The notes beneath the pieces were generated by a model that did not search any database, was not told where the DNA came from, and saw nothing but the letters and a program-made list of their open reading frames with translations. A DNA stretch of 64,000 bases from Macrostomum lignano (taxonomy: Eukaryota), in contig NIVC01000905.1 of assembly GCA_002269645.1 (NCBI GenBank), forward strand, positions 124,001 through 188,000. The letters run 5' to 3'. A program made the position numbers and the translations under genes. Numbering within the stretch: the first letter of the stretch is position 1; each line of letters opens with the position of its first letter. Below, one piece after another: positions 19,401 to 63,744 of this stretch.

Positions 19401-22400
19401 GTACAGAGTGGTTGATTATATCAGTGAGCGTCATCAGAGGCAAGGAATCCAGTCTGCTGTTGGAGTGGTAAAGCCTGAGTCCCTGTTGTTTGGCAACTTT
19501 ATCTCCAGCAGCCATAAATTACAGGTTCAAATGCTGCATGTTGTTGATGGTAGAATCGATTTTTCCGAGTCGATCATCTCCGACCTGCTAGATTTAGTCT
19601 TCGATCGCACAAAAGTCATGTCATATGATGACGAGTTTCGGCTTCTCCAGCTTGACGGAACGCGGTGGAATGCTATCAGCACAGTCCTGGGTCTGGTGGC
19701 AACACACTTGATGGCACCAACAAAAATGATAAATGCAACAGCGTCTAAAAAGCGAACGCAGCCACGGGTCTGTTTCGACTTCAACAGCTCATCAGTGAAG
19801 CAGACGCACACAGCCGCACTGCGAAGCCCGAGCCCACGCTGATGGAGACTCGGGTCAACTTTAAAAAATCTAGCGTGTGATTTGAGGCACAGGACTCAGA
19901 GTCTATCGTCGGGTTACCCTCCTGTGCCCCCACGACGGTGGAACCGCCCACCCCCAAGTGACCGAGTTCAACAGAGTTGTCAAGCAGTCTTGTCTTTGCA
20001 GTTTGGCTGGGTCCGAGATGCCGGAGGACCGAGTCAGGTTCGTGCTCGATGGTTTGAAGAACGACTTCTGTATTTCTAACAAAGTTACTTTTGTACAGAT
20101 CAGTTACTTTCACCAGCAAGCTATTGAGGCCCAGGTGCGCCAGGAGCTTGAGCAGCACCGCTAATGGCGCTGCCAAGCAGGCAATCGACCGCTCTTCGGA
20201 AGTGCACTTGGTGCGATCGCTAAGGCAGACTCGTCTTCCATCTGCCTCATTCATGACTGCAGCCTGCCACCTGGCGCCTCAGTCAATGAATTTTTCGAGT
20301 CAGAACGGAATTTGTGCTTCACATCTGCCAGCACCTTTGCCTTGTTTTCGGCTCCCGTATTTTATTTTCACAAAGCGCCTCCCTGCAACGCCGCCTCGCC
20401 TCCTCGCCGGAGCAGATGCTTCGCAGTACCGTAGGGCGATCTCATCAGCCGTCCAGTCCTGGCGTAGCTACTCAACAAGAGCAAGACTAACCCGACTCAA
20501 TCCGACCAACCCGGCTCGATCCGACCAACCCGACTCAGTCGGACCAACCCGGCTCGATCCGACTAACCCGACTCAATTCGACACACCCGACTCACCTGGT
20601 CAAATGCCACCTGAGATCTTTTAACAGTCTGCGTACTCACATCAGTGCACTGTCCAGCTGGTTAAAAGCCTTTGGTACTGAGGACCTATCAAAATACCAC
20701 CTGGTCCCACTGCTCGTTCACGGCGCCAAACGGAGGATGAGCCAGCGGCCAAGACGGAAGCTGCCGATCTCGCCTGCGATGTTGTTGTCTGCGAGGAAGT
20801 GACTTACGTCGTAATTCGAGCAGTTCCCTTGATAGAGTCTGCTGGCCTGTGACGCTGATTGCTGGTTGGGGGATGATTCGGCGTTCCAGTCTCCTGCCCA
20901 GTCAGCAGTCCGCTTCGCCAATCTCCGTCTCAGCCTTTCAACGCCACCCAAATGTGGTCGTGCTCTCCGTCAGTTATGGCAAGACGAACCAATTCTTCGC
21001 GAAGCTGCTCCGAGTGTTGCTTCCAAGGCTAAAAGAAGGACACCCGCTTTGCCCGGTGTCTGCGTTAGAGAGCCACATTCGCATCAGAAAGCTTGGCAAC
21101 CCGTGTTCTCTTATCAGTTGGCGAGCGGATCCTCTGCTGCCTAGCAACTGATGGGCAGGACGCTCGCTCGCTCGTTCTCAGCGCACAGCCTGTGCAGAGG
21201 AGGCGCTGCCTGGGCCCATTATTCTTGTGCTGTCTGCTCAAGAGGTGAAATGCGTCGGAGATTGGCGAAGTGATGCTGTGGCTGCCGCAGATTTAATGCT
21301 TTTAAAGAGAATTGCCTTGATGGGCTTTTACATGTGATTTCAGGGTTCATATTTCTGCTCTTATCCCTTGCCTTACCCTTTTTCTGTAAATTATCTGATT
21401 CGTTCGTTTTTTGTTAGTTTGGCCTTGGGGCGCATCCCAATGCCTGTTTTTTCTTTGTCTCCCCTTCACTAACTGATTGATGAATCTCTACTGAATGCAA
21501 ATATCAGTTTCTTTTGAGCACGCAGCAATTTAAATACAGCGCAAAATAAGTGGATATTCTCGCTTCTTCAAGCGGTGTTCAGAAAGTGGCGGCAGTTTTG
21601 GCCCTAGGGCTCATTCCGTGAATGCTGAAAGCTGCATCTTTGATTTACCTTAAAGCGCAATATTTAATCTTTCTTTAAAACTTACCTCAAAAGTTATTGC
21701 TGAATATGTGACCCATTGCTTAGCAATTTGACGATCATTATTCACATTTTTAATGCAGAACAATCCATTACTACAAACAATGAATTGTCTGTAGGATCGT
21801 CAAACAGAAAAACAATGAAAAGAATCAGCGGTCGCAGCACGTGACAACGATTTGTCTATGGCTCGCGCCTACCGGCGCTCGCCAGACAATCGTTGTCACG
21901 CACTGGGACCGCTGATTATTTATCTATTGTGGGTGTTTGTCTTACAGTAAAGCTTTATTTGTCTATGTCAAGCTTAAGAGACAATTTTGTACTGCCATAC
22001 GCTGCTTATTACCTCTTTCCTAAGTATCAAATGATTGCAAATGCTCAACGTAGCACTAAGCCCTTTACATTCCGTGGTAGTTTGTGGGTAAAACCACAAC
22101 CACGGATAAGCAGCAGTGGCGGGCAGTGAGGACTCAATCAACATCTAAACAGTCACTGTAAACTCAGTCACACTTTCTGATATCTGATGAAATTCTAGCA
22201 ACTTGAAATTTTGACGCTGCGCACCTTATGACGTGACAGTCAGAAGCATTTGCCACAGAGCTGTTCTGCTCCTCAAGTATTCATCTGCATCATTGATTAT
22301 GTTGAGGTAAATATTGTTTAACAAGATGCATGCAGGTAAACTTGTGGCACCGCAGCAGCTGAGCAAGACTCACTGGTCAGCTGGTTGGACAGAGCCGTGA

Positions 22401-29650: not shown

Positions 29651-31717
29651 TCCGAGTCCCTTGGGATTGGCTCTCATGGGTATTACTTGCACTACAGAAT
29701 CCCGGCCACATTTTGAGAACGCAAACCTGAAATGATGTGGCTTGAAGTGGTGACTGACACGAAATATATCAGACTGCCTTCCTTAAAACATTTAATGAGA
29801 CATTGCCTTTCTGTTATGACTTTGTAAATCGACTTAGCATTTTAATCAATCTTGTGAATACACCCACAAGAGGTTTGAAAAGCTTTCAGATAGCTATCAG
29901 GTAGCTTTGTAGATAAATCTACTAAAAGAGCCTTCCAAACAAATCTACTTTTATGCAAACACAAGAAACGAAAAAAAACGCTGAAACCTTTTCATATTAG
30001 ACATAATCATAATTTAAATTGAAGATCGGTTATTAAATTTTTATTGAATAGTATAAAATTTGGAATCAATGACAAGAAGCAGTTTTAAGTCTGATTCATT
30101 TTTAAAATCAACCAACGAAGTCGAATAGACAATATTTTTGAAGTCTTGCAGTTGTGCTCCTCAACTGTCGCTCTTGCCTGTCTTCTTGCCGATGTAGCAG
30201 ACGTGCAAAAACAGAATTCTTCGATCAAATCTGAAAAAGTAAAAACGTAGGAGATTTCGAAATTTTGTTATTTACGAAATATCTCTGCATAAGGCAATTG
30301 AACAGCTTTTCATTGACCATACTCATAAATAGTGATTATCCCATTCAAAAATAAATTCACTCGGTTTTTTAATCTAGGGTTAAGCTCAAGGACTACTAAA
30401 GTCCAACGGTGCAAGGGTAACTTCTCAGTGATCCTGGGTTCAAATCTTCTCAAGGGTCTGTAAGGGTGATGATTACTAGCTTCTGAATGTGAGATTGAAG
30501 CGTTGAAGCGTTCTTGAACAAGAGATTCGAACTTGGGGTAGGCAGTAACTTTAAATCAATGTGTCATGCTGTTGAAACATTCGAATAGCATTATCGAGGA
30601 AGCTCTATGTATACTACTTTCTGGTTTTATCTTTAGTAGTATAAGCGACCTCCTACTGATATGAAAAACGGTAAAGTTATGTCATTATTCTTATTCCAAC
30701 TGCATACACTTTTTGAGCTGAAAATTTGAACTGCGCTTGCTGTAATTAAAAACTACCTATTTATTGTAGGTATGATTACATTAGAAGTAGCAATCGTTAC
30801 TTTGGAGAAGGGCTTTGAGCAATCGCACAAAATCGAAAGACCACAGAAGACACAGTCGTGCCCATTCACCTGAGCCACTACGCAGGCACACAATGACAGA
30901 GGAGTCACATCGGACCTGACTTTATAATCGTCCTAAACTGACCTGACGATTTTCATTTAAGATTCAATTCAGACTACTGAGAAAAGTAGACAAATAAAGA
31001 TTTGAGTTGTAAAATTCCTCACAAAGCCATTAAAGAACATCCTGCGGACACTAAGCTTGGCGGGAGAGAACCGTGTGTGGCTGTGGCGGACTGACGACAG
31101 ACATTTTAGCGTGTCACAGTCAAGAAGTACACAGAAACTAAGAGCATTCCTACAGCTCGCTCACCGAGACAGTCCGTGCAGACTTCTGGCCGGAAGAATG
31201 TCAGCATTGGGCGCCCATCTGCGGCACTCCTCTCGAGCTTTGGGAAGACTTCCCGGATAGATTTTCGTGTAGCACATCTGTAGGCTGGCACCAGGACCTC
31301 TGGAAATCGGCGACCAGGCGGCTGATGGACATCTGGTCCTGACGGTTTTCTCTTGAGCAGCATCAGCTGCATCATTCTTAGCTGTCTCCGGCTGCTGGAC
31401 TCGCATCGGCGCCTTGCAAAAGTGAAAATGTCGCGCCTCAGGCTGGTAGGTGCGCCACAGCAGACGGGTCTCGGCGTCGACCAGCAAGCCGAAGTTCATG
31501 GGCGGGCGGCTGGGACCGACAAGCCAGCTTCTGCAGTGCCGGCAGGAATGGAAATCACGCTTTAGTCAATCGTGAAGCATTCACATGTAAGGCGTATGAC
31601 CCAACTATGACAAAAGAGAGTGTTTGAATTCATGTCACACGGATTTGGGTTTCGGCCGGAAGGGATGGGGCTGCCTCACAATCCCACTTCAGGGAAATGG
31701 GGCCTATGGTTCTGGCG

Positions 31718-32448
31718 CCCCTGGTGCTAAAGCCCCTGGTGCTAAAGCCCCTGGTGCTAAAGCCCCTGGTGCTAAAGCCCCTGGTGCTAAAGCCCCTGGT
31801 GCTAAAGCCCCTGGTGCTAAAGCCCCTGGTGCTAAAGCCCCTGGTGCTAAAGCCCCTGGTGCTAAAGCCCCTGGTGCTAAAGCCCCTGGTGCTAAAGCCC
31901 CTGGTGCTAAAGCCCCTGGTGCTAAAGCCCCTGGTGCTAAAGCCCCTGGTGCTAAAGCCCCTGGTGCTAAAGCCCCTGGTGCTAAAGCCCCTGGTGCTAA
32001 AGCCCCTGGTGCTAAAGCCCCTGGTGCTAAAGCCCCTGGTGCTAAAGCCCCTGGTGCTAAAGCCCCTGGTGCTAAAGCCCCTGGTGCTAAAGCCCCTGGT
32101 GCTAAAGCCCCTGGTGCTAAAGCCCCTGGTGCTAAAGCCCCTGGTGCTAAAGCCCCTGGTGCTAAAGCCCCTGGTGCTAAAGCCCCTGGTGCTAAAGCCC
32201 CTGGTGCTAAAGCCCCTGGTGCTAAAGCCCCTGGTGCTAAAGCCCCTGGTGCTAAAGCCCCTGGTGCTAAAGCCCCTGGTGCTAAAGCCCCTGGTGCTAA
32301 AGCCCCTGGTGCTAAAGCCCCTGGTGCTAAAGCCCCTGGTGCTAAAGCCCCTGGTGCTAAAGCCCCTGGTGCTAAAGCCCCTGGTGCTAAAGCCCCTGGT
32401 GCTAAAGCCCCTGGTGCTAAAGCCCCTGGTGCTAAAGCCCCTGGTGCT
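31718..32448. repeat. Perfect 15-bp minisatellite (cccctggtgctaaag) x48
   Basis: No variant unit seen across 720 bp. Confidence 0.97.
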
Positions 32449-32699
32449 GGCGCTCCTTAGATGAGGAAGCCAACTTTTGAGCAGTCCTGGCTATGCCCCC
32501 TGCTACGAATACCTGACTTCCCAAACCTATCCATGCCTTGATGAATAAAGTTCAGCTTTCGTAGCTTTCAAAAACGCGAAACAAATCAAATGTCTCAACT
32601 GCAGCTACTCGTAGGGAATAACTGAATAGTCGCTAACTGAATAGGACTGGTATGTCCCAGTAGCTTCCCAGAGTGTCCCAGGCCACCTGCAACCAGAGC

Positions 32700-33043
32700 T
32701 CACACGCTGACGTTGATGCCGGAGTTGTCTCTGAGCCACTTGAACTTCCCTCCGTCTGCCTCGTCTCTGTACAGTCCGGTCCACGCCGCGTCTCCTTGAA
32801 ACCTGCAGTCTCTGCACTGAGCTCTGTAGTCTTCTCTGAGTCTCCAGTTCCTTGCTGAGTAGTCCATCACCCAGTTCATCTCCGACTGAGATGTGATCCA
32901 CAGCAGGTGAGCAGACGGGTCTCGTCTCTGACAGTCAGAAACTGCCGCTGTGAGGTTTCGTCCGTTGGATCCCTTGACCAGGAGGTAGCAGAAGCCATTG
33001 AATTGCAGCCAGTCTGCTGTCGCACACGAACCTCTGTGTCCAT
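32700..33043 (-). CDS. C-type lectin-like domain exon (partial CTLD)
   Basis: SCATADWLQFNGFCYLLV..AAVSDCQRRDPSAHLLWITSQSEMNWV..AWTGLY..KFKWLRD matches the CTLD pattern C..W..F.G.CY / A...C / L..I.S..E / WIGL / W. Acceptor cccacag|AT is phase 1. The frame stops before any EPN/QPD/WND motif. Confidence 0.85.
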
Positions 33044-35888
33044 CTGTGGGGAGGGCAGCCCCTGACTTATCGGCCCAAATTTTTGCCAAAATTATCATCC
33101 GATACAGAGACCTCCTACTGCCTGATAAATATCTAATGACAGCAAATATCAGTCACTTTTAGGAAGGCCTGCAATCAATTTACTGAGTCAGAAGTAAGAA
33201 GAAGAGTAAGAAGTCAGGGAAACTCAGTCAGTCAGTCACTGATATGTGATATAATTCCGACAAGTTAAAAATTTCGACATTGTGGAAGTCAAAAACGTTT
33301 GCCACAGCTGCTCTGCCCTTCGAGTATTCATCTGCATCAATGATTATGCTCAGGTAAATATTGTTTAAAAAGATGCATGCAGGAAAACCGGTGGCACCGC
33401 AGCAGCCGAGCACTCACTGGTCAGCTGATTTGACAAAGCCGTGATGACGTCATCAAAGCCGCCCTCCTTCTGCACAGCCACCCGCAGCTCATATTCCTGT
33501 CCAGACTGCAGGGAGCCGCAGGTGGCAGACGGAGTGGGTGAAGACGCGGTCGAGACTTCACCTGAGCCGACTCGCTTGCAGGTGAGCTGGTACGAGACGC
33601 CAGAAGTGCTGGATGGCTGCCAAGTCACAGAGATGGCGGTCTCATTGGAGCTGTACTGAGCTGAGCTGGCGTCAATGCCGAACAGCTCTGCAATGAAACG
33701 GACCCAATAGAAGCGAGCTGTGCCTCATCAGAGCAGCTGCAATCATTTACTGAGCTCCAACTCACTGGTCAGCTGGATTGGCAGCCAGGTGACAACTTCA
33801 TCGAAGCCGCCCTGCTTAGTCACAGCCACACTCAGGTTGTAGGCCTCTCCTGACTGCAGACTGCTGATGCTGGCACTCAGATACTGTGATGGAGGCAGAG
33901 ATGTTGACGTCCCTGTGCTGACTCGCCTGCAGGTCACCCGGTACAGAACTCCTTCAGTGATGGACGCCGCCCAAGTCAGGGTGATGGAAGTCTCTGTGAT
34001 GGTGAAACTCACTGAGCTGGCGTCAATCGGGAAGAGCTCTGTGGTAGCGAGGTGGGTGAGCAGCTCCTGACTTAAAAGTCCCAATTTTTGTCTTATTATC
34101 AATTTACACCGGGGCATGCCTGCCTGATAAATATCTAATGACTGCAAATGTTTGTTTTTTAGCAAGTAGAAATATAAGTGTTTCTCAAAATCAGTGAGCA
34201 TTTCGAATCAATAATTTATTTCATGTCGTGTGGTCTGTGGTGTGATATAATGTTAGCTAGTTAAACCAAAACTTGTTCTCAGTATTAGCGGCTACAAGAA
34301 AAAAACTTTAATGTGCATTTTTCAAAACTGTATAAAATTGTAGACAAAAGTAGAAACGTTGCTGGAGACGTCATGAAAATTGGAAGGCTTTACTAACTCG
34401 ATGAATTCACCGTAGCTAATGGAGCAGCAACTGCTAATGGAGAGCAAGCTCTGAAATCACTGTTTCGAGGAAGCATAGTCGAAGGAATCGCAATGGATAA
34501 GAGCAGCATGCAGGCTGACGGCATCTCATTTTGTAAGGCATGCGTGGAAGGCAAAATGCACAAAAAACCATTTGGGAAAGGTGAGAGTTCAATGTGCAAC
34601 GAACTGTTGTCTCTGATTCACAGCGGTTGACTTAGCTGCAGGGCGGTCCGAAGACGCAGCGGGGAGGCGAGCGTCGCCCATTCCGCTAGATTCACAGCGG
34701 TGCAAATAAAAGAAACCACATCGATTGGAGCTGGCGTCGATGCCAACAGCTCTGCAATGAAACGGACCCAATAGACCACATCAAAGCAACCTCATGAGAG
34801 CAGCTGCAATCATTTAATGAGCTCTATATCACTTGTCAGATGGATTGGCTGAGTGACACTGGACTGAGTGCACTTACGATTTATTTTCAAAAGGCTGATA
34901 AACTCCTCTAGTGATTTAATATCAGCCAAAGATGCCTAGAGGTCACACATGGATGACTGAGTGTTGTAAATACTTTATAAAACATATCATTAACAGGTAA
35001 TTAATATTTTTGAGCTCACTGGTCAAAGCTGTGCCATGAATGAAAGGTGCAGGCGGAAACCCAGTCTTGACAGGTCTCACTGTGACTGTGACAGAGGCTC
35101 CGGATGGCTGGCCTGTGCACACAGCGGTTGTGTCTGGCACTCTGCCAGCGCAGCTCACTTCATACTCGACTCCGACATCGGGAGAGGCCGCCCACCGGGC
35201 TCTGAAGCTCGTCTCCGTCACATCCGAAATGTGCACTGATCCTGGGACTTTGTTGAGATCTGCAATTGTGTTGGGACTTGCTAAACTGATGTTTTAAAGT
35301 TTCGCGAGGTTTGGTACTTAAGCAGTATTAAATTAGCAATAATTTTTATTTTCAATAGTAAATGAATCATCTAATAATCAAATGAAGATTAGTTGGAGTC
35401 AAAATTCAAAATGAATTTATTCAGAAATCCAGGTGGCCAGGTGTGGCAGCCAACATTTTGCACTGAATGACCCACGCAGTTTCATTCTCACCTGTCCTTC
35501 CAGAAAGATGGAATGCAGGGCTGAGTCTGCAATTCCGAAGTCCAGCCTGAATGGAGAAGTTGTACTCAGTAGCCGCTGGGAGATCTCGAAACGTGAATGT
35601 CTCATCTGAAGCGTTGAGTTGCTGAGTGGGACAGCTGGGGCAGCTCAGTGTATAAAAGTACCCTGTGATGCCACTGTCTGGTGCCAGCCAATCAACAATT
35701 ATTGATGAATTTGTGGAAGAGCGAACAGCAGCCACTGTCACAGGATCCACCTGACCCGGCACCAGTTTTCCACACGACGTGCCTTGAGCAGCCGCCTCAT
35801 CGCACAGCAGCAGAGCAGCTGCAGCAGCAACCAGAAGCAGCCTGTAGAAGCAGAAGAGAGACCGAGCTCTGTCTGCTTGAGAACTCAT
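32700..35888 (-). CDS. R4: FN3 x4 + C-type lectin domain protein (A-B-D-C-CTLD), possibly secreted or truncated
   Basis: Exons 35888-35492 (leader differs: MSSQADRARSLFCFYRLLLVAAAAALLLC), 35259-35020, 34038-33766, 33687-33418, 33043-32700. All junctions are phase 1 and in frame. No TM exon was found downstream. Confidence 0.7.
34400..34630 (+). mobile_element. Ty1/Copia GAG-pre-integrase / integrase N-terminal fragment
   Basis: Frame from 34442: EQALKSLFRGSIVEGIAM..FCKACVEGKMHKKPFGKGESSMCNELLSLIHSG*. This matches the Copia C..C..GK....PF ... L.LIHSD signature. Not in the ORF track. Confidence 0.75.
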
Positions 35889-38053: not shown

Positions 38054-41000
38054 CCGTGCGTTATCTGTCTCTGCTGGCGTCAACAACTTCGGGTTGCTCT
38101 GGCACTGATGTGTACAGCGGGTGCAAGGCCATGCTATCTAAGACCAAGATCTTGGCTGACTGAAGTTTGATAGCTTGTGGTGTGTCGGAGTGGCCAAGGG
38201 ATCCCGTATGAGCGGCCACATTCACCTGCAAAAAGTACACCTTACCCTAGGGAGACTCAAGCAAATGAGACAGACTCCCACCAGCCTACGGGCAAAGCTT
38301 TAAGAGCACTCAGGGACTGAGAGAACTCTTTTGTCTGGGGAGCTGGAATCACTGGACTTTCCTAAAAAATGATTTCCCCTGGAACTGCGGTGTTGTGCGA
38401 CAATCAAGATGACGCTAATGACTACGTTTCCTGGCCTATATTAAGTATTCGTATTTTTACTTGCGCATAGTATATTAATGGCAATGTATTAGTTCCTTAC
38501 ATTGATTGAATTTCAGTTTCACTTTTACGTCTCCTGAAATGATGATCCGAATACCTTGATTTGACACGGCAGGCAGGTGCATGAGGTCACTCGGCGCTGG
38601 CGTAGATCCAGGTAGTTCAGGCTGATGCCTGAATGATGATGTAGCTGATGTAAACGACCGTTGATGCTCTGGGCTTTGATATCTTGGTTGAAGTTTGGGT
38701 GGCCTAGCGTTCGAGGGACGTCACCTGCCTATAGCCACCACTAAAATGGGGTGGATCGGAGAATCCACAGCTTAGGAGAAAATCAAAATCGGGAGGTCAC
38801 ATGACTGGAAGAAAAACTATAGCCTTGCGGGAATGGGGGAGTTTTTTATTGATTGGGTACGTTCCGCTTGGATGGTTTCGAAGCGGAAGGTTCGAAGGTT
38901 CATGTTGGGTGAGAAAGGATAGGAGCGTAGGGAATGAGTCTTCCAATGAGCCGTTGGGAGTAGGGACCTATAGATATCTACGATTGGGATCGAGCATGCA
39001 TGGGTGAAAATGTACACAAAGGGAGATCGATATTATCATCAGAATTTTTGCAGGGCCGGACAGCTGTAACATTATTTATTGAAGCAGCTACTTAGCTCGT
39101 ACATGTAAGATGGCGTGAGTGATGAAGTAAGGACTTAAAGGGCAAATTATAATTTACGCAGCTTGCAGCCTTGACGCGCATTTTCTGGCTCTAATTGTGT
39201 TAAAAGAATGCTGATACATTTCCTCACAGTTTTTTATGTTGTCCAGATTAATTTTCTCGTTCACAAATTTTCGCAAACTATATGAAAATCCTGCAAACTC
39301 GCGGTACATGCGGGATCAGAGGGCTGCTTCCCTAGATGCGATGTCTTCTCGCTGTAAGAGGTGTCCATCAGGGCCGACCCGGGTTTTCATTGTGAGGACC
39401 TGGGCGCTTGTTGGACCCTCTGGTACACATCGGCGGACCAACGAGGCCGTAGAGGTGTTGGAGCGCTGAATGGACTGGCTACTACGGGTCGACGTCCGGC
39501 GATCGCAGCCACCTTTGCCGGGAGAAGGAAGAGTTTCAGTGTAGCCCACGTCGTGCTCTGCGTGCCGGATGACATCGAGGCTGGAAGTTTCTGCCGAGGA
39601 GCTGACGGGCAGGTGACGAAGCTGCAGCACTGTCAGCAGTTCTGGTGCCTGACGACGTCTCCGTGCAGAGGCCATGTAACCGCCAAAGGGGGAGGCCTCG
39701 CTGTTTCAGCGGATGCGGCTAAGCAAAATTTGGCTACGAGCGAGTCACCAAATGCGGCACTCTATCGCCGCACCAGCCTGTCTGTCACAGCCAACTGTTG
39801 CGCCTTCGGAAACTCCAGCTGGCAAGCCATCATCCAAATGAGTCGTAGTAACTGCCCGCAATCGGTGCATGAGGTGCGCTGCTGCTGACGCTGCAGGCAC
39901 CACCCTACCGGCGGGAACAGACGCACACTCGGCGTTTCGTCGACTGCCTGCTGGCTGATGCCGGCGCCCTAGCTGAACACTGCCGGAGGTGCGGCTTAGT
40001 TTGCGCCCAGGCCCCGAAAAGCGCCCTGTGAAGTTGGTGATCACGCTTTGACTGGCTCTTACAGCGTATGCGTGTATAGTTTGTTTGTTTGTATTTTTTC
40101 ATCGTTATTTTTTTCAACAAAACTGAAGCAAAAAAATCAAGCACAGTGACGTTCTTAGTTGCAGGTTCCCAAAAGGATGATGAACTCAACAATGGCGGAG
40201 TAGATTTTTAGCGTTAGCACTTGGCAATTCAGCGGCAAGATAAATATTAATAAGGGCCGCAACTTTGGGCACTATACTTACAGTAAACGTGAGAATACGG
40301 AACTGGTAATGTTTTAAAGTTGGTACCGTATGTCAAAACGGCCCTTGGCGGGGCTACTGAAGTTGGCAACGTCACACACACCGAATATCCCAAATTTTCG
40401 GCAGTCAAATTTCATCGGCAACTACATGCCATAAGATCCAAACAGGCTTAACAAGGAAATTAAGGGTGCATTGTCTTACATAGCACTGTAACTTTTTATT
40501 GGCCGTGATTGTAAACACAAACACAAAAAAACAGTTGAGGCAACATGTACTTGGACTAAGGAGATACCCAGAACTCTTTGAGACGCAACCTGTCCTTGAC
40601 AAGTACATGTACTGACATGTTTGCCTGAATTATTGTATGGCACATAAATTGTATGGCACATATCACACATGTACAATCGGGCCACACAATTAGGCTTAGT
40701 TGTCTACTGTGAGTAGGTTGTTTATGCGCTAGTAATTAAAAAGTGTTTTGCGACAAATTTAGTTTTAGATTGACTAATTCTTACAATTTTTTTAATGTTT
40801 TAAGAATATTATTATGCTGAAGTCCGCGGAAATTAACGAGCGTAGATGCTTTCTTAGAAACTTTCCGCGCTAGCTTAACAGTGATAGGTGCTTGCAGTTA
40901 ATCTTTAATCCATTGGCATTAAAGTATATAAAAGTGGGTATGCCTACATTTATTTAACTACTTTATTTTCAACTATTATCTTTTTTTTCAGCTACACCTA

Positions 41001-41955
41001 CCTATTGTCATAACCTAAGTTTAGGATATTGTTGGTGGTTGTTCCTTTATGCAAAAAATAAACGTGTTGAATCTCAATCTCAATAAAAATGACTAGGCCT
41101 AAGGCCTTAGGCCTATAGATATTGTAGCTCATAAATGTCATAGTCCAGATCATGCTAGCTGCATGCCTGAACAAAAATCTAATAATTACAAATGCACAGT
41201 GCACACAAAAAAATTGAGTGCATACCCATGATACCTATGGCTATTCTCCAAACTATGTTGCTGTTGCAACAATAAATGACCTTTTTTAAATTGTGTAATA
41301 AACCCTTTTTGGCAAATAATTTAAATTTAGTTAATTTTTCTGCTTTTTTGGTGATACCATTTATAGGCCTAGTACAAAATTGATATATGTAAAGATTTGT
41401 TCAAATGCTTTATTATAAGCTTAAAAAAACTAACAAAAGCTTGAAATAAATGCTTTAAAATGATTTTTTAAATCTTTTTTTAATGACTATGCCATTCTGT
41501 GTGATTTTATAAAGTGCATGCTAAGTGTGTATGTGTATGTACACTATTTTCTTAAGAGTGATACATGCCAACTATGTATGTCTACTTTTGGTTTGGCATG
41601 TAAGGTCAATGAATGCCTGAATTTTTGAGCATATATTGTATGATCTGGAGTATGGCATAAATGAAAGGAAGGAATGAAAGGAGGGAATCATGGACTAAAA
41701 AGTTTGCATTTGAACAGTTAAGAGTTTTAGGAGTTGTAGGTAGGCCTAGAGATGCTAATACCAGGATCCCAGTATTAAAAAATATCAGTTTTGGGCCATT
41801 TTTTGTATTACCAATACTGGTATTAGGGTCCAGAATTAGTCTAAAATTATGTCTATATTTTTACAAATTTGCAATTTTTTGTTTAAATTGCATTTTTCTA
41901 AAAATTAAAAAATGGCAAATGATTTAGCTTCAGCTTTTTAGCTTTTTGGGTTGTC

Positions 41956-42264
41956 TATACATGGGCAACCTCCAAAATTGGGTTGGCCATGTGACTTAGG
42001 CCCTAGTTTTAACGAAAAATGCGACATAGTTTTTGGCCAAAAATGCAACTTAACATGTAAAAAAAACCTAACTAATGCAAAATTAATGCAGCTTTCGGTA
42101 AACGGTAGGAGTAACTATGACTGTCTTATTAAGCCAAAATGCCTCATCAGCTACTTAGTACTACTACTTAGGTGTTTTTTTGGGTGCATTTTTGCGATTT
42201 CCTTGGTTGCCTGCCAAATTGGTTGGCCAGATTGGCTGACTCGGCCAACTGTTGCGCATGTATG
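41956..42264 (+). mobile_element. hAT-like MITE, copy 1, containing a 28S rRNA-derived segment
   Basis: Termini (C/T)ATACATGGGCAAC ... GTTGCGCATGTATG. Similar along its length to copies 2 and 3. TSD degenerate. Confidence 0.7.
42097..42159 (+). other. About 63-bp decayed fragment of 28S rRNA (R2 / I-PpoI target region) inside a MITE; not an rRNA gene
   Basis: GGTAAACGGTAGGAGTAACTATGACTGTCTTATTAAGCCAAAATGCCTCATCAGCTACTTAGT versus the conserved 28S GGTAAACGGCGGGAGTAACTATGACTCTCTTAAGGTAGCCAAATGCCTCGTCATCTAATTAGT (recalled). Counterparts at about 46110-46175 (-) and 46727-46790 (+). Confidence 0.8.
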
Positions 42265-43917
42265 TTTGGGTCTAGGGATAGGAGAAGGCAGCACACTTGT
42301 TTTGCTAGGGGAAAAGGATGAGCAGTTTGCCTAGGGAGAGGGAAGAGTTACACACTCTTTGTAGAGGAAAAAGGAAAAGAAAGAAAAGACTGTATGTCTC
42401 TAAATGAACAAGGCTGACTCAGTTGCTATTTTTAGACTATGATTAGTGCTAGGGCCTAATAGCAATTGCCAGAATAGGGCAGTCAAGCATAAGTTGTTCT
42501 TTCTCACAGTATATTTGCTTATATTTATAGTAATTTTAATAAATATGGCAGACAATTATTAATAAAATTTAAGCAATAGTACATATATAGTAAGCATAAT
42601 AAAGCAAGGCAACATATTTAACCACTTAAAAAGGAAAAATAGAATTAAAACTATGAGTAAAAGATACATGATTTTTTATGATCTATTTATTAAACAATAT
42701 AACTATAAAAAGGCAAATATGATAAGGCAATCAATAAGGTAAGGCTAGTAAAAATGCTACTAAACTGATAACTACTATACAAACAATTACTATTATTCCA
42801 CAAATTGATTAGATTTAAAAGTCATGACAATTCAGTAAATGATTTGCAATGCATTCAAAAGATAGGCAATAAGAAAATAATAGAAAAAATGCAATAAAAT
42901 TTGACTTTTTGAAATTTGAAAGCCAAAATATGAAAAAAGCTATTAAATACTGGTATTCAAAACCAATATTGGCAAAATTCTGGTATTGAATAGCGGGATC
43001 CTGGTTTTGGGCAAGTCTGGTATTTTAGCATCCATAGTTATGGGATTATAGGATTGTGGCTCATAAATGAAAAAGGCAATTTAGGATAGGATAACATATG
43101 GCACATCTTGAAGAAAAGCAGGGGTGCTTGAGCAGTTGCAAGCACATGGCACTTAAATAAGTTAGATTGAGGCTTTAGGAGGCTTTGAGGCTTTAGGAGA
43201 AGTGGAGCATTAAGAATTGAGTTTATAGAACATGGGTTTGGGGGCACTAATTCCTATAAACTCAGAAGGGTAGGGTTGACATTTGGTCTTGGTTGCATTT
43301 GATTGGACAAGAAATAAAGATGCAGGCCTATTAGCCAAAGGCTACTAGCTGATTGACAAGCAGTAAGATAGGCATAATGTTTCTAAAATATTTATACTTG
43401 GTATTTGAATCAGTTTTGTCAGATATTTGAATTGAATTAAATCAATTAAAAAATCTCATTTCATCCCATTTCTAGACCTACTGTTAACTTTTATAGGGCC
43501 TATTGTATAATTTATATCTAGCAAAGTTTGTGTCTAGACATTTGGAGAAATATTGCCTAATAGAACTTTCTATTATAGGACTTGAGGTAGGGTGCATAGT
43601 AATTACTCGTTTCTGTCTATTTCTTAGAAGAGCCGATTTCAAATTCGCGCTAAAACTTTGTTTTAATTTGGTGAGTTGCAAAAATATTTTCGCGATTAAT
43701 ATTTGTTATAAACTGTAATGATTTCTACTATAAATAGAAGCACTGAGTGGGCCAGGAGGACTAACTCGGACAACTCGCCCAGCTCATTCAACTTGTTCGT
43801 TTGTGTACTTTAACAAAAAGCTAAAACTGACTAGAAGAATTGAAAATTGACTTGTTCATTTCTTAGAGAATAAGAACCCCAATTGGGAGAGTCAGAAATC
43901 CGCTAAAAAGCGAGAAT

Positions 43918-44240
43918 CGCCTCAGGGCAGAAGAATCGCTTCAGAGCAGGAATATTCGCCTCAGGGCAGAAGAATCGCTTCAGAGCAGGAATAAACGCCT
44001 CAGGGCAGGGATTTTGCTTTAGAGCTGTGACCCTCTGATCCCGGGAATGCCAGGACTGAGAGAATAATACTGTAGGGGAAGTATAGGAATAGAATAAACA
44101 GTGCCAATAGACCGCTCAGGCCAGAAAGTACAAATAGAAGTACAGACGCTACCAATAGAAGTACAGACGCTACCAGTAAAAGTACATACGCTATCAATAG
44201 AAGTACAGACGCTACCAATAGAAGTACATGCGCTACAAGT
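43918..44240. repeat. Short tandem repeats (39-bp x about 2.5; 21-bp agaagtacagacgctaccaat x about 5) in a CpG-retaining segment
   Basis: 39-bp period at 43918/43957/43996; 21-bp repeats at 44125-44240. Confidence 0.8.
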
Positions 44241-46009
44241 AAAAAGCAAGTAATACCCAGCAATATTGACAAGAAGGAACACCCCTACAACAACTTTGGT
44301 GGCAATAGTGGGATATTATTAATAGAGGCAGAAGTAAGCCCTACGTCAGACTAAAAAACAATATCGCCTATTGGATATAAATTGAATCCAATAGCTAGGC
44401 CTACCATAGTCAGGAAGGTACATATTGTGTACCAAAATCAATTTTCCCTATTTAGGCAAACAGTTTTGGTAAAAGGTTTGGCAATAATATTATCTATTAT
44501 ATAATCAATTCTATAAGTAAAGATTATATATATATTCACATTGTTTAAGATAGTCATTAGTTATATATAGTCTAAAGGCTATAGTTTGGAATGACATATA
44601 TACTAGAATTTCCTAGTGTACAACAAGAGTACTTGCCATTTTTTAGCATAAATCAATATATATCTTAGCATATATGACATGTACATATATACATGATACC
44701 CCTTTAAATATATTTAACCTTGACCTAATATAATAAAAACATTTTTTAGTCCCAGGCATACAAACAAAGCCCCATACTTTTTTCCTAATATACAATAATA
44801 CACAATCTAAACTATGGTCTAAGGGTTGTAAATGTCAGTTAGGGTCCTACATATCAAGTTCAAATTTTGTTTTAATTTTTTTAAATGTCATCTTTATTAT
44901 TAAATACTATCATTATGCAAAATGGTGCTAACATGTTTGTAAATTGCATAGATATTAAGGGGTATTCAAATAGTCTTAAGACTTTTTCACATTACTCTTT
45001 AATAGTCAGCAAGAGTAACAGCAACTGGTTTATTTCATAGCAGCTTTATTTACTAATAAACTCAGTGAAAACATTTCAAAAATATCATAAACGTTTTAAA
45101 AGTTATGCTTCCTTAACTGCAGTGGGCTACTGCATTTCAATATATGAATAAGAACTGAAATTGAACTACAATTTTGAAATCTCAGACATTAAGCAAATTT
45201 AAACTTGTGTGAAAAATCTCTAGCATATGCCATATCATCACTCTCTATATCTATGGTACAAGTTTCATATGCTTACTGCTAGTGTGGCAATTTGAAAATG
45301 AAAGGCAGTTTTCATGCCAACTATGATTGCATTGAGCAGGAAGTGCAATGGGTTCTTGTCCACAAAATGCCAAGACAAGCATATGCAGATGCCAATGATG
45401 ACATGCTTACCCTATGGAAGAAATGCATCCAACTGAGAGTGACAAATTGAAAAGTTTTTTGAAGGACAACTGACTTACTGTTTCATGGTGCTCCATATGC
45501 AGCATCCAAGTTGCTGTTCATATATTAAGATGAAATATCCCACTGCAGTTAAAGAGGCATAAATTTTGAAAAGTTTGTATATTTTCAAAATTCTTTCATT
45601 GTGTCATTAGTAAATAAAGCCACTATGAAATAAACCAGTTGCTGTTACTCTTGCTGACTATTAAAAAGAGTAATGTGAAAAAAAAGTATTTTTGGACTTT
45701 TTGACTTTTTGGATGCCCCTCATGCAGTCTAAACATGCAGTTGAAAGAGTCATGCAACATGTAGTCAAGCATCATCCTGTCAGGCTCTAGCTTTGACTGC
45801 AATTTTCCTGGGCTTGTTGCATACCCTACAGACATTCAATGTTTTAAGTCTGACTTTTAAGTGAGTTTTTCTTGTAGCCAGTTTTTAGTAGCTATTTTGT
45901 TAATGGCCATTTTTGATTTAATTGTAAAATTATAGAATAATAGCTATTTAAGCAGAGTTATAGCTTAAACAATAATACTTTTGTTCCATTCAAAGTATAT
46001 ATAGACCAA

Positions 46010-46291
46010 CATACATGCTCAACAGTCAGCCGACCAATTTGGCGGCCACCAAGGAAGTTGCAAAAATGCCCACCCAAAAAACACCCATGTAGTAGTAGTA
46101 CTAAATAGCTGACAAGGTATTTTAGCTTAATAAGACAGTCATAGTTATTTCTGCCATTTACCCAAAGTTGTGTTGATTTCGCTTTAGGGTTTTTTTTACA
46201 TATAAGTGACATTTTTGGCCAAAAACTATGTCGTATTTTTGTTAAAACTAAGTTGCATGGCCAACCAAATTTTGGAGATTGGGCATGTATG
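46010..46291 (-). mobile_element. hAT-like MITE, copy 2
   Basis: CATACATG...CATGTATG termini with a perfect 8-bp TSD TAGACCAA (46002-46009 and 46292-46299). Confidence 0.8.
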
Positions 46292-46599
46292 TAGACCAAT
46301 TTTTTTAGAGCTATATAGAGTTAAGGGTATATAGTTATTATACCCCCTAGGTCAACAATGAATAAATAAGTATTCTATTGGGTTAAAAATATTTGTATAT
46401 CCTAGCTTGTAAGGGGAATGGTTTTGTGGAGCCACAGTGTAGAATGTTGCTAATGCAAAGTAAATATAAAAAAATTAAAGAGTTAGTTAAAATGGAGAAA
46501 AGAAGAAGAAGAAAAAGCCCATTTATTGTAGGGTTTTTCTAGATAATAGGGGGGCTCTTCATAATAGACAAGGTATTTTGGTATCTGGAATAAGCTAAA

Positions 46600-46894
46600 C
46601 ATACATGTGCCACCTCCAAGATTTGGTTGGCCATGCAACTTAGTTTTAACAAAAAATGTGACAGTTTTTGGCCAAAAATATGGCTTACATGTAAAAAAAC
46701 CCTAATGCAGAATTAATGCAACTTTAGGTGAACAGCAGGAGTAACTATGACTAACCAATTAAGGTAAAATGCCTCATTATCTACTTAGTACTACTTGGGT
46801 ATTTATTTGGGTGGGCATTTTTGTGACTTACCTTGGTTGGCCACCAAATCGGTCAGCCAGATCGGCTGACTCGGCCGACTGTTGCGCATGTATG
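46600..46894 (+). mobile_element. hAT-like MITE, copy 3
   Basis: CATACATG...CATGTATG termini with a perfect 8-bp TSD AAGCTAAA (46592-46599 and 46895-46902). Confidence 0.8.
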
Positions 46895-49332
46895 AAGCTA
46901 AAGGTAATAGGCATTGGGGCAAGGAGGATTAGGTATAGTAAAAGGATCAGGGGTCTATTTGCTAGATGATCTAGGTCTAGGTATAGAATGATATGTTTAA
47001 TCAGTTTCATTAGTAGCCCAATTACTATATATATAGAGAGCCCTAACAAAAAGTTAAAACAGTCTATTGATTTCAATTGTGCATTCCTTTGCATCAGGTG
47101 TCAATGGCAGCTAGCAGCTTGGCCTCTATGTCTTGTAAGGCAAGCACCATATTGAGCTCTAGCTGTGGCATCTTGGGCTAGTATCATTGTTTGGCTAGCT
47201 TTAGCCTTGGTATTATGGTAGGGCAGCTCCTGGGCTAGGGACAACCTCTAGTTATGGGTGGCCATTAGCATATAGAATAGCTCTAGTTGCAGGCTGGCCA
47301 ATGGCCTTCTGGCATAGAAAAATGGCATAGAGGTGATCTTTGACTATTGAAATTTCTATAGTATAAGCAGCAGTCAAAGCTTTATATTATCTAGTAAGCT
47401 AGGTCTTACTATAAACAGTCACTTGGTATTTTGTTGGTCTTCTAACTGGCCTCTAGCTCCTATAGCAGTAGTTAGACTAGCTGTTAGGCAGGAATAGATG
47501 TAGGCAATTGAAGCACCCAGACTGGGTCTTATCTGTGAGAGCCCCCCCCCCCCTGTTGTACTAGAGTTAGCAATTAGTGGCATGCAATATAGCATTACAG
47601 GTATACTATGCTTGGCTCAGAGTCTATAGGGGTCTATTAAGTCAGGCTAGACTATGGTTGGCTAATCTATAGTAGTCTACCTACTGGGTCTAGTCGAGGT
47701 AGTTGAAAAATAAGTTCTTATAGGTCTAGGTGATGAAATGGTGGTTTTTTTGGTTGGACCCTCTAATAAAATAATTTGACCATTGATAGATCTCTCTGAT
47801 TGAATCAAAGTCCAATGAAAAGAATATTACATAGGGCATAATTCACATATGAATAAATGTAAATTGAAATAAATAATAAAATACAATACAAAGTAGTAGC
47901 TCTACTATGATATAACAATATATTGGCTTCTTAGCTTTTTCTTAGAATAGAATCCTATATACTAAAAATGAGTTGTAATTTCACTAAAAGGCTATCAAAA
48001 GTTGTCCTAGGGTTTGGTTTTATCTAGTGTACACTTATATTTTATTGTTGCCATCATGCTAGAGGTTATTTTTTCTAGCTCTGAAATACTCATCACTGTT
48101 GACACTAAATATTGTTGACACCAATATAATTCAATTTTCACAAGCTGATGCTAGACTGGCTGAGTGGCTTGACTATCAATAAGCCATCTAACTACCTAGT
48201 ATGTTTCACTAGACACCAGCTATTCAATCTGATATGGCAGCCTGACTATATCAATATATAAACTATATCAGTATCAAAAAAATATATAAAACTAGTTTTT
48301 TAAAACTTTCTTTTTTTGAGACATTTGTTGAGTAAGATAACATGTTTATAACCATGATTAAATTTTAAGGCTATACATTTTAACAGATTATATAACAGAT
48401 TAATGTGGCATTTTCAGATTTGTTCCTAGTATATCATATTTCTGATTTTAAAAGCAGATAATTTTGTCAAAAGATTCTAAAGTTAAAGGGCTAAATTCAA
48501 GATGCATGCAGTCCTAGTCAAAGCCAGTGAAGCCAGTTAAACATACCATTTCTAATACCCAGGGAATGAAAATCAGTTATTTGCGTAATTTGCTATAGAT
48601 ATTATTTACAATAGCCTGTTTTAAAACTATGTGACAATTTTTCAATAGAATTATTCACAAAAAATCTTTTCCTCTGGTGCTTTCAAAATATTATTGAAAT
48701 TGCATTAGATTTCTTTATACAGCAGCTTTATAAAGCTCCTTCAGTCAGAGTCAGAACAAGGGTCTTGCACCTCCCAGAAGCAGCTCCGAAGGGGTAGTGT
48801 GTCATTTGCCTTTGGCTTTGTCTCTGTGTGCCCTGCGATGTCAACAACAACAGGCGAGTCTCTTTGATGATACAGTGGAGTGCAAAGGGGTCCAGCATAC
48901 GTAGGTTCCAATTGTGCTAACAGCACTCTTATAAACAACTTCATGGCATATGACAAAAGGAAGATCCCATGATGCTACCTATTTCTATGTAGTCATAGCA
49001 CTTTGATGGGTAACTTGTCTAGGTTAGTGGCGTGACCACCAGGCTAGTGCAATGCAAGTGAACTGCACTATGTTTAGTTGCTGGGTCACTTGGCTTGTAC
49101 TTTTTGTGTACTTTTGTGTACTTTTAGCTTGAAAGTATCGGGTTAAAGTTAAATAATGATCAGGCCACAATGTATCTGAAAAAGATCTACAGATGTCTGT
49201 GAGTCTGTTGTCAAACATGTCTTTTTATTTTATGCAAAGTTAAGCAGAATTAGCCGCGGTTAGTACTATTTCTGTTAGTATAAATGTAATTAAACAACAT
49301 TCAATTCTATTAATCCCTAATCTCCTCAGCAA

Positions 49333-49593
49333 ATGTCGAGCATCAAAGGAGAAGCAACAGAAGACTATATTGGCAACAAAACTGATCGATGCCTGTCTGA
49401 CACGGCAATTAAAACTGTGTCAGGCCTTGGTATCGGCATCCTATGCTCTGTGCTGTTCCTTCGTCGCAGACCCTGGCCTGCGGTCCTTGGCACCGGAATT
49501 GGCCTAGGCATGGGCGTCGCTAATTGCGACAACGATTTCAAGACTCCGCATTCGCTGGTGTCGCAACAGATTCGAGTGGCGCAGCGTCAATGA
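49333..49593 (+). CDS. MICOS10: MICOS complex subunit Mic10 (MINOS1 family), single coding exon
   Basis: 86 aa: EDYIGNKTDRCLSDTAIK, SGLGIGILCSVLFL, RRR loop, WPAVLGTGIGLGMGVANC..DF. This matches the Mic10 pattern (D..G.KWDRCL.D, two Gly-rich TMs, basic loop, WP...G.G.G.GM...NC). A branch point and acceptor (ctaat..ctcctcag) lie 3 nt before the ATG. Confidence 0.9.
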   Translation: MSSIKGEATEDYIGNKTDRCLSDTAIKTVSGLGIGILCSVLFLRRRPWPAVLGTGIGLGMGVANCDNDFKTPHSLVSQQIRVAQRQ

Positions 49594-63702: not shown

Positions 63703-63744
63703 GTGAGGCCGCCTGCGACTGGGAGCTCCATTGCGAGGCATGAG

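Follow-up and report, generated by a model that had tools for sequence, protein, structure and literature searches.

In the 64-kb window, i.e. the whole stretch of 64,000 nt from Macrostomum lignano that was analyzed here, a gene on the minus strand (G1) carries the 5' part of an FN3 cell-surface gene in one reading frame with exons coding for a CTLD, and the transition between both parts lies around a splice acceptor. With a probability of roughly 0.7, we regard G1 as a chimeric gene: within a tandem cluster of genes for FN3 membrane proteins, the DNA would have been rearranged and the acceptor of the recipient reused. According to this scenario, a G-type paralog would have contributed 2.8 kb from its 5' end, with the promoter region, the exon for signal peptide and FN3-A, the exons FN3-B, D and C, and a compact C2-to-D-type intron in full length. 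This piece would have been joined to a fragment of a flatworm CTLD-family gene at, or a few nt from, the 3' splice site of this intron.

The window covers a cluster of duplicated FN3 cell-surface genes. The units R1 to Rn, taken as repeats within a single gene by the initial annotation, turned out to be separate tandem paralogous genes with a signal-peptide exon of their own in each; one of these, G6, is inverted and shows plus-strand matches in the window. At their 3' end, the G-type paralogs feature a transmembrane (TM) segment and a short tail, and the differences between the paralogs of the cluster are whole phase-1 exons. Recent gene-conversion tracts are present in the cluster, and tandem repeats are found on the flanks of the G1 region. 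The elements of G1 and the two comparator introns are located as follows (positions in the window):

35492–35888, minus: G1 exon 1 with start codon, signal peptide and FN3-A, phase 1 at its end (ORF and donor GT; within the 651-aa CDS)
35020–35259, minus: G1 exon 2, FN3-B, phase 1-1 (within the spliced CDS)
34728–34849, minus: relic inside the intron between exon 2 and D, composed of a D-exon end, a 78-nt intron and a C-exon start
34039–34203, minus: intron segment 5' of G1's own D exon, the same sequence recurring before the CTLD exon (BLAST, alignment)
33766–34038, minus: G1 FN3 exon of type D, phase 1-1 (Pfam fn3 match; tblastn exon-type map)
33418–33687, minus: G1 FN3 exon of type C, phase 1-1 (tblastn exon-type map; Pfam fn3)
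33220–33417, minus: 5' part of the 374-nt intron, similar to the start of the G2 and G6 C2-to-D introns (BLAST)
33049–33160, minus: 3' part of the 374-nt intron, similar to the 110 nt that precede each of the three D exons (BLAST, multiple alignment)
33034–33050, minus: junction interval, including the used acceptor AG at 33045–33044 (multiple alignment; comparison with L002, the P0007 locus)
32704–33043, minus: CTLD exon 1 (CT1), coding for a 5-residue linker and the first two thirds (N-terminal) of a divergent CTLD; entered in phase 1 and left in phase 2
31531–32703, minus: intron between CT1 and CT2 with a pure 15-mer microsatellite inside (31717–32448)
31165–31530, minus: CTLD exon 2 (CT2), coding for the rest of the CTLD (its C-terminal third, SWLVGPS...HFHFCKAP), then a linker and an N-terminal piece of a second, degenerate CTLD
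30162–30230, minus: last coding exon, FDRRILFLHVCYIGKKTGKSDS followed by the stop codon, without TM
18676–22373, minus: comparator, G2 C2-to-D intron between the C2 exon (~22643–22374) and the D exon (~18675–18403)
56843–58803, plus: comparator, G6 C2-to-D intron (self-BLAST, exon-type map)

The spliced CDS of G1 is an intact ORF of 651 aa, formed by seven exons with canonical GT-AG sites, and its product is identical to the hypothetical protein PAA75075.1 in GenBank (BOX15_Mlig011792g2). The splice from exon C into the CTLD, which had been proposed from the DNA alone, is present in GenBank models derived from transcripts, including this exact protein; its support is thus the published annotation (Mlig_3_7), for which RNA-seq and transcript assemblies were the sole inputs (PMC5730564). 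As likewise proposed, a phase-1 CTLD-coding exon follows the intron, and the phase-1 frame is continuous from the FN3 exons into it. CT1 is not a complete module, since it covers only the N-terminal two thirds of the domain, which runs on into CT2 (31530–31165) and is followed by the last exon (30230–30162). At the donor site of CT1 (AGCGT/GTGAGC, splice site marked by a slash), which ends the exon at 32704, an in-frame TGA sits within GT/GTGAGC. An end of the protein at this TGA (32703–32701) and a frameshifted relic of a CTLD C-terminus behind it were both considered and are ruled out by P0002, the model of a sister copy, and PAA75075.1, which use this donor and then splice into CT2.

The product opens with a signal peptide, continues with four FN3 domains and a complete, though divergent, CTLD, and ends with a second, truncated CTLD and a tail of 22 residues. 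Pfam fn3 (PF00041) matches four stretches of it (E 6.4e-25; 87.6 bits vs. a cut-off of 25). The N-terminal signal peptide is its sole hydrophobic segment, and the predicted protein is probably secreted; the picture of a lectin head on an FN3 stalk at the membrane does not hold for a product without TM.

A sister copy (L001, contig NIVC01001416.1, model P0002) contains the same exons and the same 374-nt intron (96.8% identity). L001 is collinear with the window from 41775 to 25700, with 86–98.7% identity across the junction. At least two sequenced copies retain the intact ORF, and three proteins are annotated. Comparing window and L001, we counted 8 synonymous and 4 non-synonymous changes in the CTLD part (dN/dS 0.14; Fisher p 0.0013), the corresponding dN/dS of the FN3 part being 0.65. 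The CTLD part of G1 is under purifying selection.

The evidence for the recipient side comes from the intron preceding CT1 (33417–33044; 374 nt, GT..AG, phase 1), which lies between the FN3 exon at 33687–33418 and the CTLD exon starting at 33043. In the self-BLAST of the window, its nt 6–198 match 22365–22160 (77.9% over 208 nt; E 2e-40), directly 3' of the G2 C2 exon, and its nt 1–136 match 56843–56985 on the plus strand (E 2e-21), directly 3' of the G6 C2 exon. The 5' part of the intron and exon C form one continuous HSP (33693–33220 vs. 22649–22160; 87%); the match thus reflects homology of a whole segment and no mobile element. Towards the 3' end, intron segments starting at nt 258, 271 or 307 and reaching nt 369 match 34149–34054 (E 1e-11), 58685–58788 (E 7e-8) and 18751–18691 (E 4e-5), and all three matches are located immediately 5' of the window's three D-type exons, including G1's own D. 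A further match connects nt 258–301 to 21515–21472 within the G2 C2-to-D intron. The claim that the intron is homologous at both ends to the C2-to-D intron, together with the coordinates quoted for it, was thereby reproduced, with E-values of 2e-40 for the 5' part and down to 1e-11 for the 3' part. The greater part of the 374 nt is covered by this homology. Relative to the 374 nt in G1, the G2 intron is enlarged by insertions of ~0.65 and ~2.7 kb, and the G6 intron holds a 29-mer tandem array (58088–58590). From 33043 down to ~25903, the start of the G2 upstream region, no homology to the rest of the 64-kb window was found: 3' of the G1 acceptor, ~7 kb of unrelated DNA with three exons replaces D, C', the GC-rich ectodomain exons, TM and tail.

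The upstream part of G1 bears further traces of recombination. Exon C has flanks of two kinds, D-C' type upstream and C2 type downstream, and its diagnostic sites for C, C2 and C' form a mosaic, consistent with gene conversion. The relic at 34849–34728 shows 83.7% identity over 123 nt to 33782–33663 (E 3e-30) and also matches 18419–18300 and 59060–59179; it marks an older rearrangement within G1. The junction at a splice site, the whole-exon differences between paralogs, this relic and the gene-conversion tracts could together mean that exon-boundary-directed recombination is unusually frequent here, so that the genes would represent a diversifying family of immune-type receptors or lectins instead of a single chance event, an idea which we regard as decidedly doubtful.

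Next, the position of the junction was delimited from both sides. The homology to the D introns runs through ...TAAGTCAGGGGCTGCCCTCCCC (to 33051; multiple alignment) and plausibly through CACAG, and the homology to the CTLD exons of L002 begins at 33033, possibly at 33041. With D-intron homology to at least 33051 and CTLD homology from 33033, the junction therefore falls within at most 17 nt around the acceptor AG (33045–33044), which confirms the change of homology at the acceptor, and on the recipient side the break is confined to the final 0–7 nt of the intron or to the first nt of D. The 10 nt at 33043–33034 (ATGGACACAG) are alignable with the CTLD linker of L002 (GACGGAAATCAAGG..), and in an alternative gapless register the same 10 nt put the acceptor of D (CACAG/AG) at 33038–33032. 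In the latter register, with CACAGAG shared, the original D acceptor may survive at 33035–33034, a new upstream AG restoring the frame. Equally fitting, an 11-nt deletion may have occurred, with D's AG at 33045–33044 and the homology to the CTLD linker from 33041.

On the CTLD side, five CTLD exons of L002 show 86.6–89.5% DNA identity to CT1, with alignments starting at 33033, and CT2 shares 81.9% DNA identity with L002 15821–15946. Uninterrupted ORFs of this locus (e.g. 14878–15742) contain the C-terminal third of one CTLD, an S/T linker and the N-terminal two thirds of the next CTLD. In L002, the counterpart of the junction falls within the exon in each of the four internal CT1-type exons; judged from these alignments, the putative CTLD-side break lies inside an exon and not in an intron. 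The first CTLD exon of P0007 has a linker and an acceptor of its own and begins 35 nt farther 5', and the L002 intron in front of it has no similarity to the window. Regarding the age of the parts, a comparison of G1 with the P0007 gene gives a saturated dS in the FN3 exons (1.6 to infinity) and a dS of 0.52–0.59 in CT1; the CTLD part of G1 therefore postdates the separation of the two FN3 lineages. However, CT1-type exons are roughly equally alike among themselves, and if they evolve in concert, G1's CTLD could look younger than it is.

Under the fusion scenario, the CTLD-side break would have occurred within such a composite exon, at the end of the Ser/Thr-rich linker and ~5 codons before the first CTLD cysteine. 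Since this break would be exon-internal, the incoming piece would have come without an acceptor of its own and would use that of the former FN3 exon D; with phase 1 on both sides, the frame would have been maintained. D, C', the large GC-rich ectodomain exons, TM and tail would have been lost in the process. The direction of the rearrangement, and illegitimate end joining filtered by selection as the mechanism, are what we infer from this arrangement. Retroposition of a CTLD mRNA is ruled out, as two introns are kept in the CTLD part. The domain swap at a splice acceptor that the initial annotation had suggested is thus correct in placing the junction at the acceptor; it was not the exchange of one exon, as the whole 3' half including the TM exon is replaced.

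The identity of the new domain was established by several comparisons. All matches of the CT1 exon in a phmmer search against the PDB (16/16) are CTLDs, and a profile of the subfamily finds 83 PDB sequences at E≤0.01, all of those listed being CTLDs. The best structures for this profile are Ly75 (6e-11) and CD302 (1.2e-7); CLEC4A (2.3e-6) is among the matches as well, with CEL-I matched over positions 2–145, and hhalign against the langerin CRD gives a probability of 81% (E 1.2e-5). The CTLD core is characterized by an N-terminal C..W..G.CY hairpin, a Cys in alpha1 paired with the Cys of the C-terminal 'FCK', and WIGL. In an alignment of 10 sequences of the subfamily, the core motifs CATADWLQFNGFCY, SDC, WTGL and HFCK are invariant or near-invariant. 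In a word-index search of proteins, the isolated CT1 peptide gave no match, and a CTLD alignment as query matched P0009 only. An AlphaFold2 model of P0002 has a pLDDT of 25–45 over residues 393–573, the CTLD region, which is too low to serve for comparing folds. Based on the sequence comparisons, we assign the CTLD of G1 to the CTLD superfamily as a divergent member.

The initial annotation had further considered the module to be of the carbohydrate-recognition type and named the Pfam Lectin_C profile as a check. This profile (PF00059) has no match at E≤1 to CT1 alone, the full 160-aa domain, P0009, P0011 (6 repeats), P0007, P0004 or P0015. In true C-type lectins, Ca2+ site 2 is formed by an EPN or QPD tripeptide and the WND motif. 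Here, the counterpart of langerin's GEPNN is G-PSR in G1, with EPN replaced by -PS-, and 'ghPk' in the consensus of the subfamily, and the region of WND is not alignable and reads WRT in G1. Moreover, no Cys is found at the aligned positions of the second canonical disulfide (C2 in beta3, C3 after beta4) in the Ly75 and subfamily alignments, and an additional QC.DC pair is present in an insertion of the flatworm subtype. The missing Lectin_C match, EPN/WND motifs and C2-C3 cysteines do therefore not support sugar binding, and we propose a non-lectin, protein-binding use of G1's CTLD.

Several other explanations were weighed against a fusion. If the combination of FN3 and CTLD were ancestral (P0007-type) and kept by G1, G2–G6 would have swapped the CTLD for D, C', the GC-rich exons and TM. 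The anciently diverged paralogs P0004, P0005, P0007 and P0008 show the matching layout of FN3-A, FN3-B and a C-like exon followed by the same CTLD type, in P0007 also with TM, and the pairing of three FN3 domains with this CTLD is consequently not an invention of G1. The CTLD also evolves ~6 times slower than the FN3 part at non-synonymous sites, and the discordance in aa identity (84% vs. 55%) could be partly an effect of rate. However, the synonymous divergence is discordant too (CT1 dS ~0.53; FN3 saturated). In addition, the G1 intron is of G-type up to the acceptor, unlike that of P0007 with its upstream exon start, linker and acceptor; the CTLD of G1 begins at a position that is exon-internal in the CTLD family; and the 110-nt motif 5' of the D exons occurs in three paralogs, including in front of G1's own D. 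We therefore consider an ancestral layout unlikely.

It is also quite improbable that the CTLD exons represent a separate gene or a dead relic, with G1 as a truncated FN3 pseudogene and the ORF as a coincidence or annotation read-through. The intact 651-aa ORF over seven GT-AG exons in at least two copies and three annotated proteins, as well as the dN/dS of 0.14, speak against it, and the CTLD exon used alone offers no usable start codon or signal peptide (the ATG at its start is in the +1 frame and opens an ORF of 55 aa). A point in its favor is the UniProt model P0001, which leaves out the CTLD exons and continues from G1 into exons of G2, but this model reads the C2 exon of G2 in a wrong frame, as mis-predicted models typically do. 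The truncated second CTLD and the makeshift look of the C-terminal tail would fit a relic as well, and M. lignano possesses polycistronic precursors that are split up by SL trans-splicing (PMC5730564). A chimeric assembly of two loci has to be considered in a genome which is more than 50% repetitive, with a redundant assembly (PMC5730564) and tandem repeats on the flanks of the region. The collinearity of the independent contig L001 across the junction (41775–25700) and the third annotated copy make such an artefact extremely unlikely.

Altogether, G1 is a clean but ordinary case of gene fusion or exon shuffling, which does not reveal a new mechanism and concerns a gene already in GenBank. As a well-resolved natural example for the birth of a new multidomain extracellular protein, with the recipient intron left whole, the acceptor reused and the donor cut at a domain boundary, it would illustrate how a membrane protein turned into a probably secreted one that is under purifying selection. 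It can serve in teaching and in catalogues of how genes arise in a flatworm genome that was duplicated recently, and it points to a flatworm CTLD subfamily missed by Pfam.

Among known systems, R3-type receptor tyrosine phosphatases (DEP-1/PTPRJ) lend their name to several UniProt models and share weak 'Dep-1 third Fn3-like' matches of the FN3 domains; Pfam scans of G1, P0007 and P0004 revealed no PTP catalytic domain, and the G-type paralogs end with their TM and short tail. Multi-CTLD type I membrane proteins (DEC-205/Ly75, mannose receptor family) provide the best solved-structure matches of the flatworm CTLD, and the flatworm protein P0011 has six tandem copies of the G1 subtype and a TM. 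This subtype differs from the DEC-205/mannose receptor family by its lack of the C2-C3 disulfide, EPN/WND and a PF00059 match and by its QCxDC insertion, and G1 has a single complete CTLD placed behind FN3 domains. The M. lignano paralogs P0004, P0005, P0007 and P0008 (e.g. BOX15_Mlig027029g1) share with G1 the signal peptide, FN3-A, FN3-B, a C-type FN3 and the same unusual CTLD (79–83% aa identity in CT1; 'WLVGPS..HFH.CKAP' in the C-terminal third of P0007). Unlike G1, they lack a D exon, and their CTLD exon follows an unrelated intron and brings a linker and an acceptor of its own; the identity of the FN3 exons to those of G1 is just 44–54%, with saturated dS, and P0007 ends with a TM. In comparison with classical module shuffling, the CTLD of G1 is not a symmetrical 1-1 module but consists of two exons, phase 1 in and phase 2 out; the whole 3' end is replaced, with no sequence of the recipient gene after the CTLD; and an intronic break exists on the recipient side only, at the very last bases of the intron. 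Nevertheless, G1 resembles the exon shuffling or gene fusion of phase-1 modules (Gilbert; phase-compatibility rule of Patthy) in its symmetrical 1-1 FN3 exons, in the entry of a new exon in phase 1 via a canonical intron, and in the resulting new combination of extracellular domains within a tandem gene cluster.

The core proposal of the initial annotation, capture of a C-type-lectin-like domain (CTLD) exon at the acceptor of fibronectin type III (FN3) exon D, holds for G1, the FN3-CTLD fusion gene. Protein searches with its spliced product returned Macrostomum lignano proteins only. G1 does not belong to a single repetitive gene but to a cluster of separate tandem paralogs. Each of these units has a signal-peptide/FN3-A exon of its own at the start and an FN3-B exon next:

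35888, minus: G1 start exon
~25659, minus: G2 start exon
~14806, minus: G3 start exon
~7528, minus: G4 start exon
2162, minus: FN3-B exon from which G5 becomes visible
~51230, plus: G6 start
5532-5726, 6112-6508, 11431-12111, 12501-13410, 60966-61819, 62204-62549: 17-mer tandem arrays

Every FN3 exon is in phase 1-1 and matches Pfam fn3, and the paralogs differ by whole exons (window 1-25700 and 51200-64000). In G2 and G6, FN3-B is followed by FN3 exons C, C2, D and C' and then by GC-rich exons ending in a transmembrane segment (TM) and a short tail; in G3 and G4, it is joined directly to the GC-rich exons (with TM), without C, C2, D and C'; in G5, B, C and C2 are seen before the window edge is reached. 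The large 3' exons have a GC content of 64-68%, compared with ~45% elsewhere. Just 3' of the last large exon of G3, an ORF (9259-9642, minus) encodes an additional, incomplete copy of the TM and cytoplasmic-tail segment (GAATIVVAVVVPLVVILVVAAALLIFLRIRRQN...). The related 17-mer arrays flank the same small exon on both sides in G4, G3 and G6; the two sides differ from each other, yet are conserved between paralogs. Between the head-to-head G1 and G6, window 40000-50000 is AT-rich (GC 0.33-0.38) and unlike the rest in composition. Several family members are automatically named 'Protein-tyrosine-phosphatase' in UniProt; a PTP domain is not detectable.

The G1 intron between the C exon (33687-33418) and the CTLD exon measures 374 nt (33417-33044) and was compared with the window by BLAST. 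Its nt 6-198 match 22365-22160 (77.9% identity, E 2e-40) and its nt 1-136 match 56843-56985 (E 2e-21), the first bases of the C2-to-D introns of G2 and G6, respectively, each in one HSP together with the exon. At the other end, nt 258-369 match the ~110 nt directly 5' of all three D exons (34149-34054, 58685-58788, 18751-18691), with a further match of this 3' part at 21515-21472, within the G2 intron. As both ends match, the G1 intron is a compact C2-to-D intron; that of G2 is longer by about 0.65 and 2.7 kb and that of G6 by ~1.7 kb, including a 29-mer array. The two-ended homology described initially was reproduced at all its coordinates, with significant alignments and E-values far beyond chance.

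Homology to the D intron is clear in the alignment through ...TAAGTCAGGGGCTGCCCTCCCC (to 33051) and plausibly extends through CACAG; 3' of 33043, self-comparison of the window gave no match to other parts of it until the upstream region of G2, ~25903. From the other side, five CTLD exons of L002 (NIVC01000479.1, locus of the diverged paralog P0007) show 86.6-89.5% DNA identity to the G1 CTLD exon, in alignments starting at window 33033, and the codons just 5' of this position, GGA CAC AGA GGT, resemble GGA AAT CAA GGC in the structurally equivalent L002 exon. The junction therefore lies within 33050-33034, an interval containing the acceptor AG (33045-33044) at which homology had been reported to stop. 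Alternatively, a gapless register would place the original CACAG|AG of exon D at 33038-33032, in which case the frame would be restored by the AG upstream of it; in either alignment, the break falls within a few nucleotides of the exon D start.

Downstream, an in-frame TGA after ...INVSV sits within the donor site AGCGT|GTGAGC, and the gene runs on into two more exons:

31530-31165, minus: CT2, second CTLD exon, with the CTLD C-terminal third (SWLVGPSRPP...HFHFCKAP), then a linker and the N-terminal ~55 residues of another CTLD, which is truncated
30230-30162: last exon, 22 residues and stop codon

Splicing gives an intact ORF of 651 aa, whose product is identical to GenBank PAA75075.1 (BOX15_Mlig011792g2); two further annotated copies exist. 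Since the GenBank annotation of this assembly, Mlig_3_7, was built from RNA-seq and transcript assemblies only (StringTie, TACO, de novo transcripts, TransDecoder; PMC5730564), the splice from C to the CTLD exon is transcript-supported via the published annotation. The CTLD spans two exons rather than one. In one UniProt model, P0001 (A0A1I8HN17), the CTLD exons are skipped and G1 exons 1-4 are linked to the G2 C2 exon at an internal site that is out of frame (33606-33419 / 22562-22375); this is probably a mis-prediction. The sister contig L001 (NIVC01001416.1) shows collinearity with the window across 16 kb and has all seven exons; its 374-nt intron is 96.8% identical. Between both copies, the CTLD part shows 8 synonymous and 4 non-synonymous changes (dN/dS 0.14; Fisher p 0.0013) and the FN3 part 20 and 38 (dN/dS 0.65; Fisher p 0.13). 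The G1 protein has no hydrophobic segment apart from the signal peptide and, unlike its neighbours' products, is predicted to be secreted. The intron between the first CTLD exon (CT1) and CT2, 1173 nt in the window versus 1829 nt in L001, carries a perfectly pure 15-mer microsatellite (GCCCCTGGTGCTAAA, 48.8 copies; 31717-32448); an array 75% similar to it also occurs at L002 22165-22709.

Pfam Lectin_C, the profile proposed for checking the domain, matched neither the exon, nor the whole domain, nor any relative tested, including a six-repeat protein. Single-sequence PDB matches are all CTLDs, a subfamily profile retrieved 83 PDB sequences at E<=0.01 (among the matches listed, all CTLDs, including Ly75, 6e-11, and CD302, 1e-7), and hhalign against the langerin CRD gave E 1.2e-5. 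Judging from these matches, the domain is a true, albeit divergent, CTLD. The cysteines of the N-terminal hairpin, the disulfide from alpha1 to the C-terminus and WTGL are all retained, whereas C2-C3 cysteines are missing and a QCxDC pair is present in addition; the AF2 model of the region was too poor for use. At the EPN/QPD position of sugar-binding CTLDs, G1 has -PS- and the subfamily 'HPK', and WND is absent. Carbohydrate recognition, suggested initially, is therefore not supported. This flatworm subfamily (P0011; L002 2337-7184, 13714-16202) goes undetected by PF00059, the additional QCxDC pair and the absence of canonical C2-C3 cysteines are features of the subfamily as well, and its exons are offset from the domain boundaries.

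An exhaustive HMMER search found only 14 relatives. P0011 has six tandem copies of this CTLD type and a TM, while P0004, P0005, P0007 and P0008 from M. lignano combine a signal peptide, FN3-A, FN3-B and a C-like FN3 with the same CTLD type (P0007 additionally with a TM), so an old family branch already combined FN3 with the CTLD. Immediately 5' of the P0007 gene lies a multi-CTLD gene. G1 seems not to have inherited the combination, because its dS to the P0007 gene has reached saturation in the FN3 exons (at least 1.6) but is 0.52-0.59 in CT1, with the caveat for CT1 age of concerted evolution among CT1-type exons. In addition, the intron preceding the first CTLD exon of P0007 has nothing in common with the window, and this exon carries an 11-codon linker of its own and its own acceptor 35 nt further upstream than in G1. 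Moreover, the C-terminal third of the G1 CTLD is of the 'WLVGPS' type, as in the last P0007 CTLD, to which it corresponds and whose N-terminal part lies mid-way in a long composite exon. In such exons (uninterrupted ORFs at L002 14878-15742, 14165-14793 and 3659-4290), an S/T-rich linker connects the C-terminal third of one CTLD with the N-terminal two thirds of its successor. The donor-side break therefore lay inside an exon, at the linker/domain boundary, which explains why the recipient intron had to supply the acceptor.

Unequal exchange and gene conversion have evidently occurred repeatedly in the cluster, as indicated by a 122-nt relic in the G1 intron between exon 2 and D (34849-34728, minus: D end, 78-nt D-C intron, C start; 83.7% identical to 33782-33663), by the 95.9% identity of the G1 D-C and G2 D-C' blocks (34089-33413 vs 18726-18050) compared with only 85% in exons 1-2, and by diagnostic sites revealing C-type exons as mosaics. 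The D exon differs from that of L001 (12970-13242) by 16.5 non-synonymous and 3.5 synonymous changes, with G2-type residues in L001, a pattern suggesting that paralogs recently underwent gene conversion, not that positive selection acted.

In the proposed event, a CTLD fragment cut inside a donor exon would have been joined, in G1, at the acceptor formerly serving FN3 exon D. Of the domain swap originally envisaged, capture at the acceptor is retained, but not the exchange of one exon: the whole 3' end was replaced. The event is a gene fusion that deleted the membrane anchor. The FN3+CTLD combination itself predates G1, being present in older paralogs, and the gene was already annotated from transcripts. 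Altogether, G1 represents a neat, well-mapped case of a known evolutionary process rather than a new kind of system.
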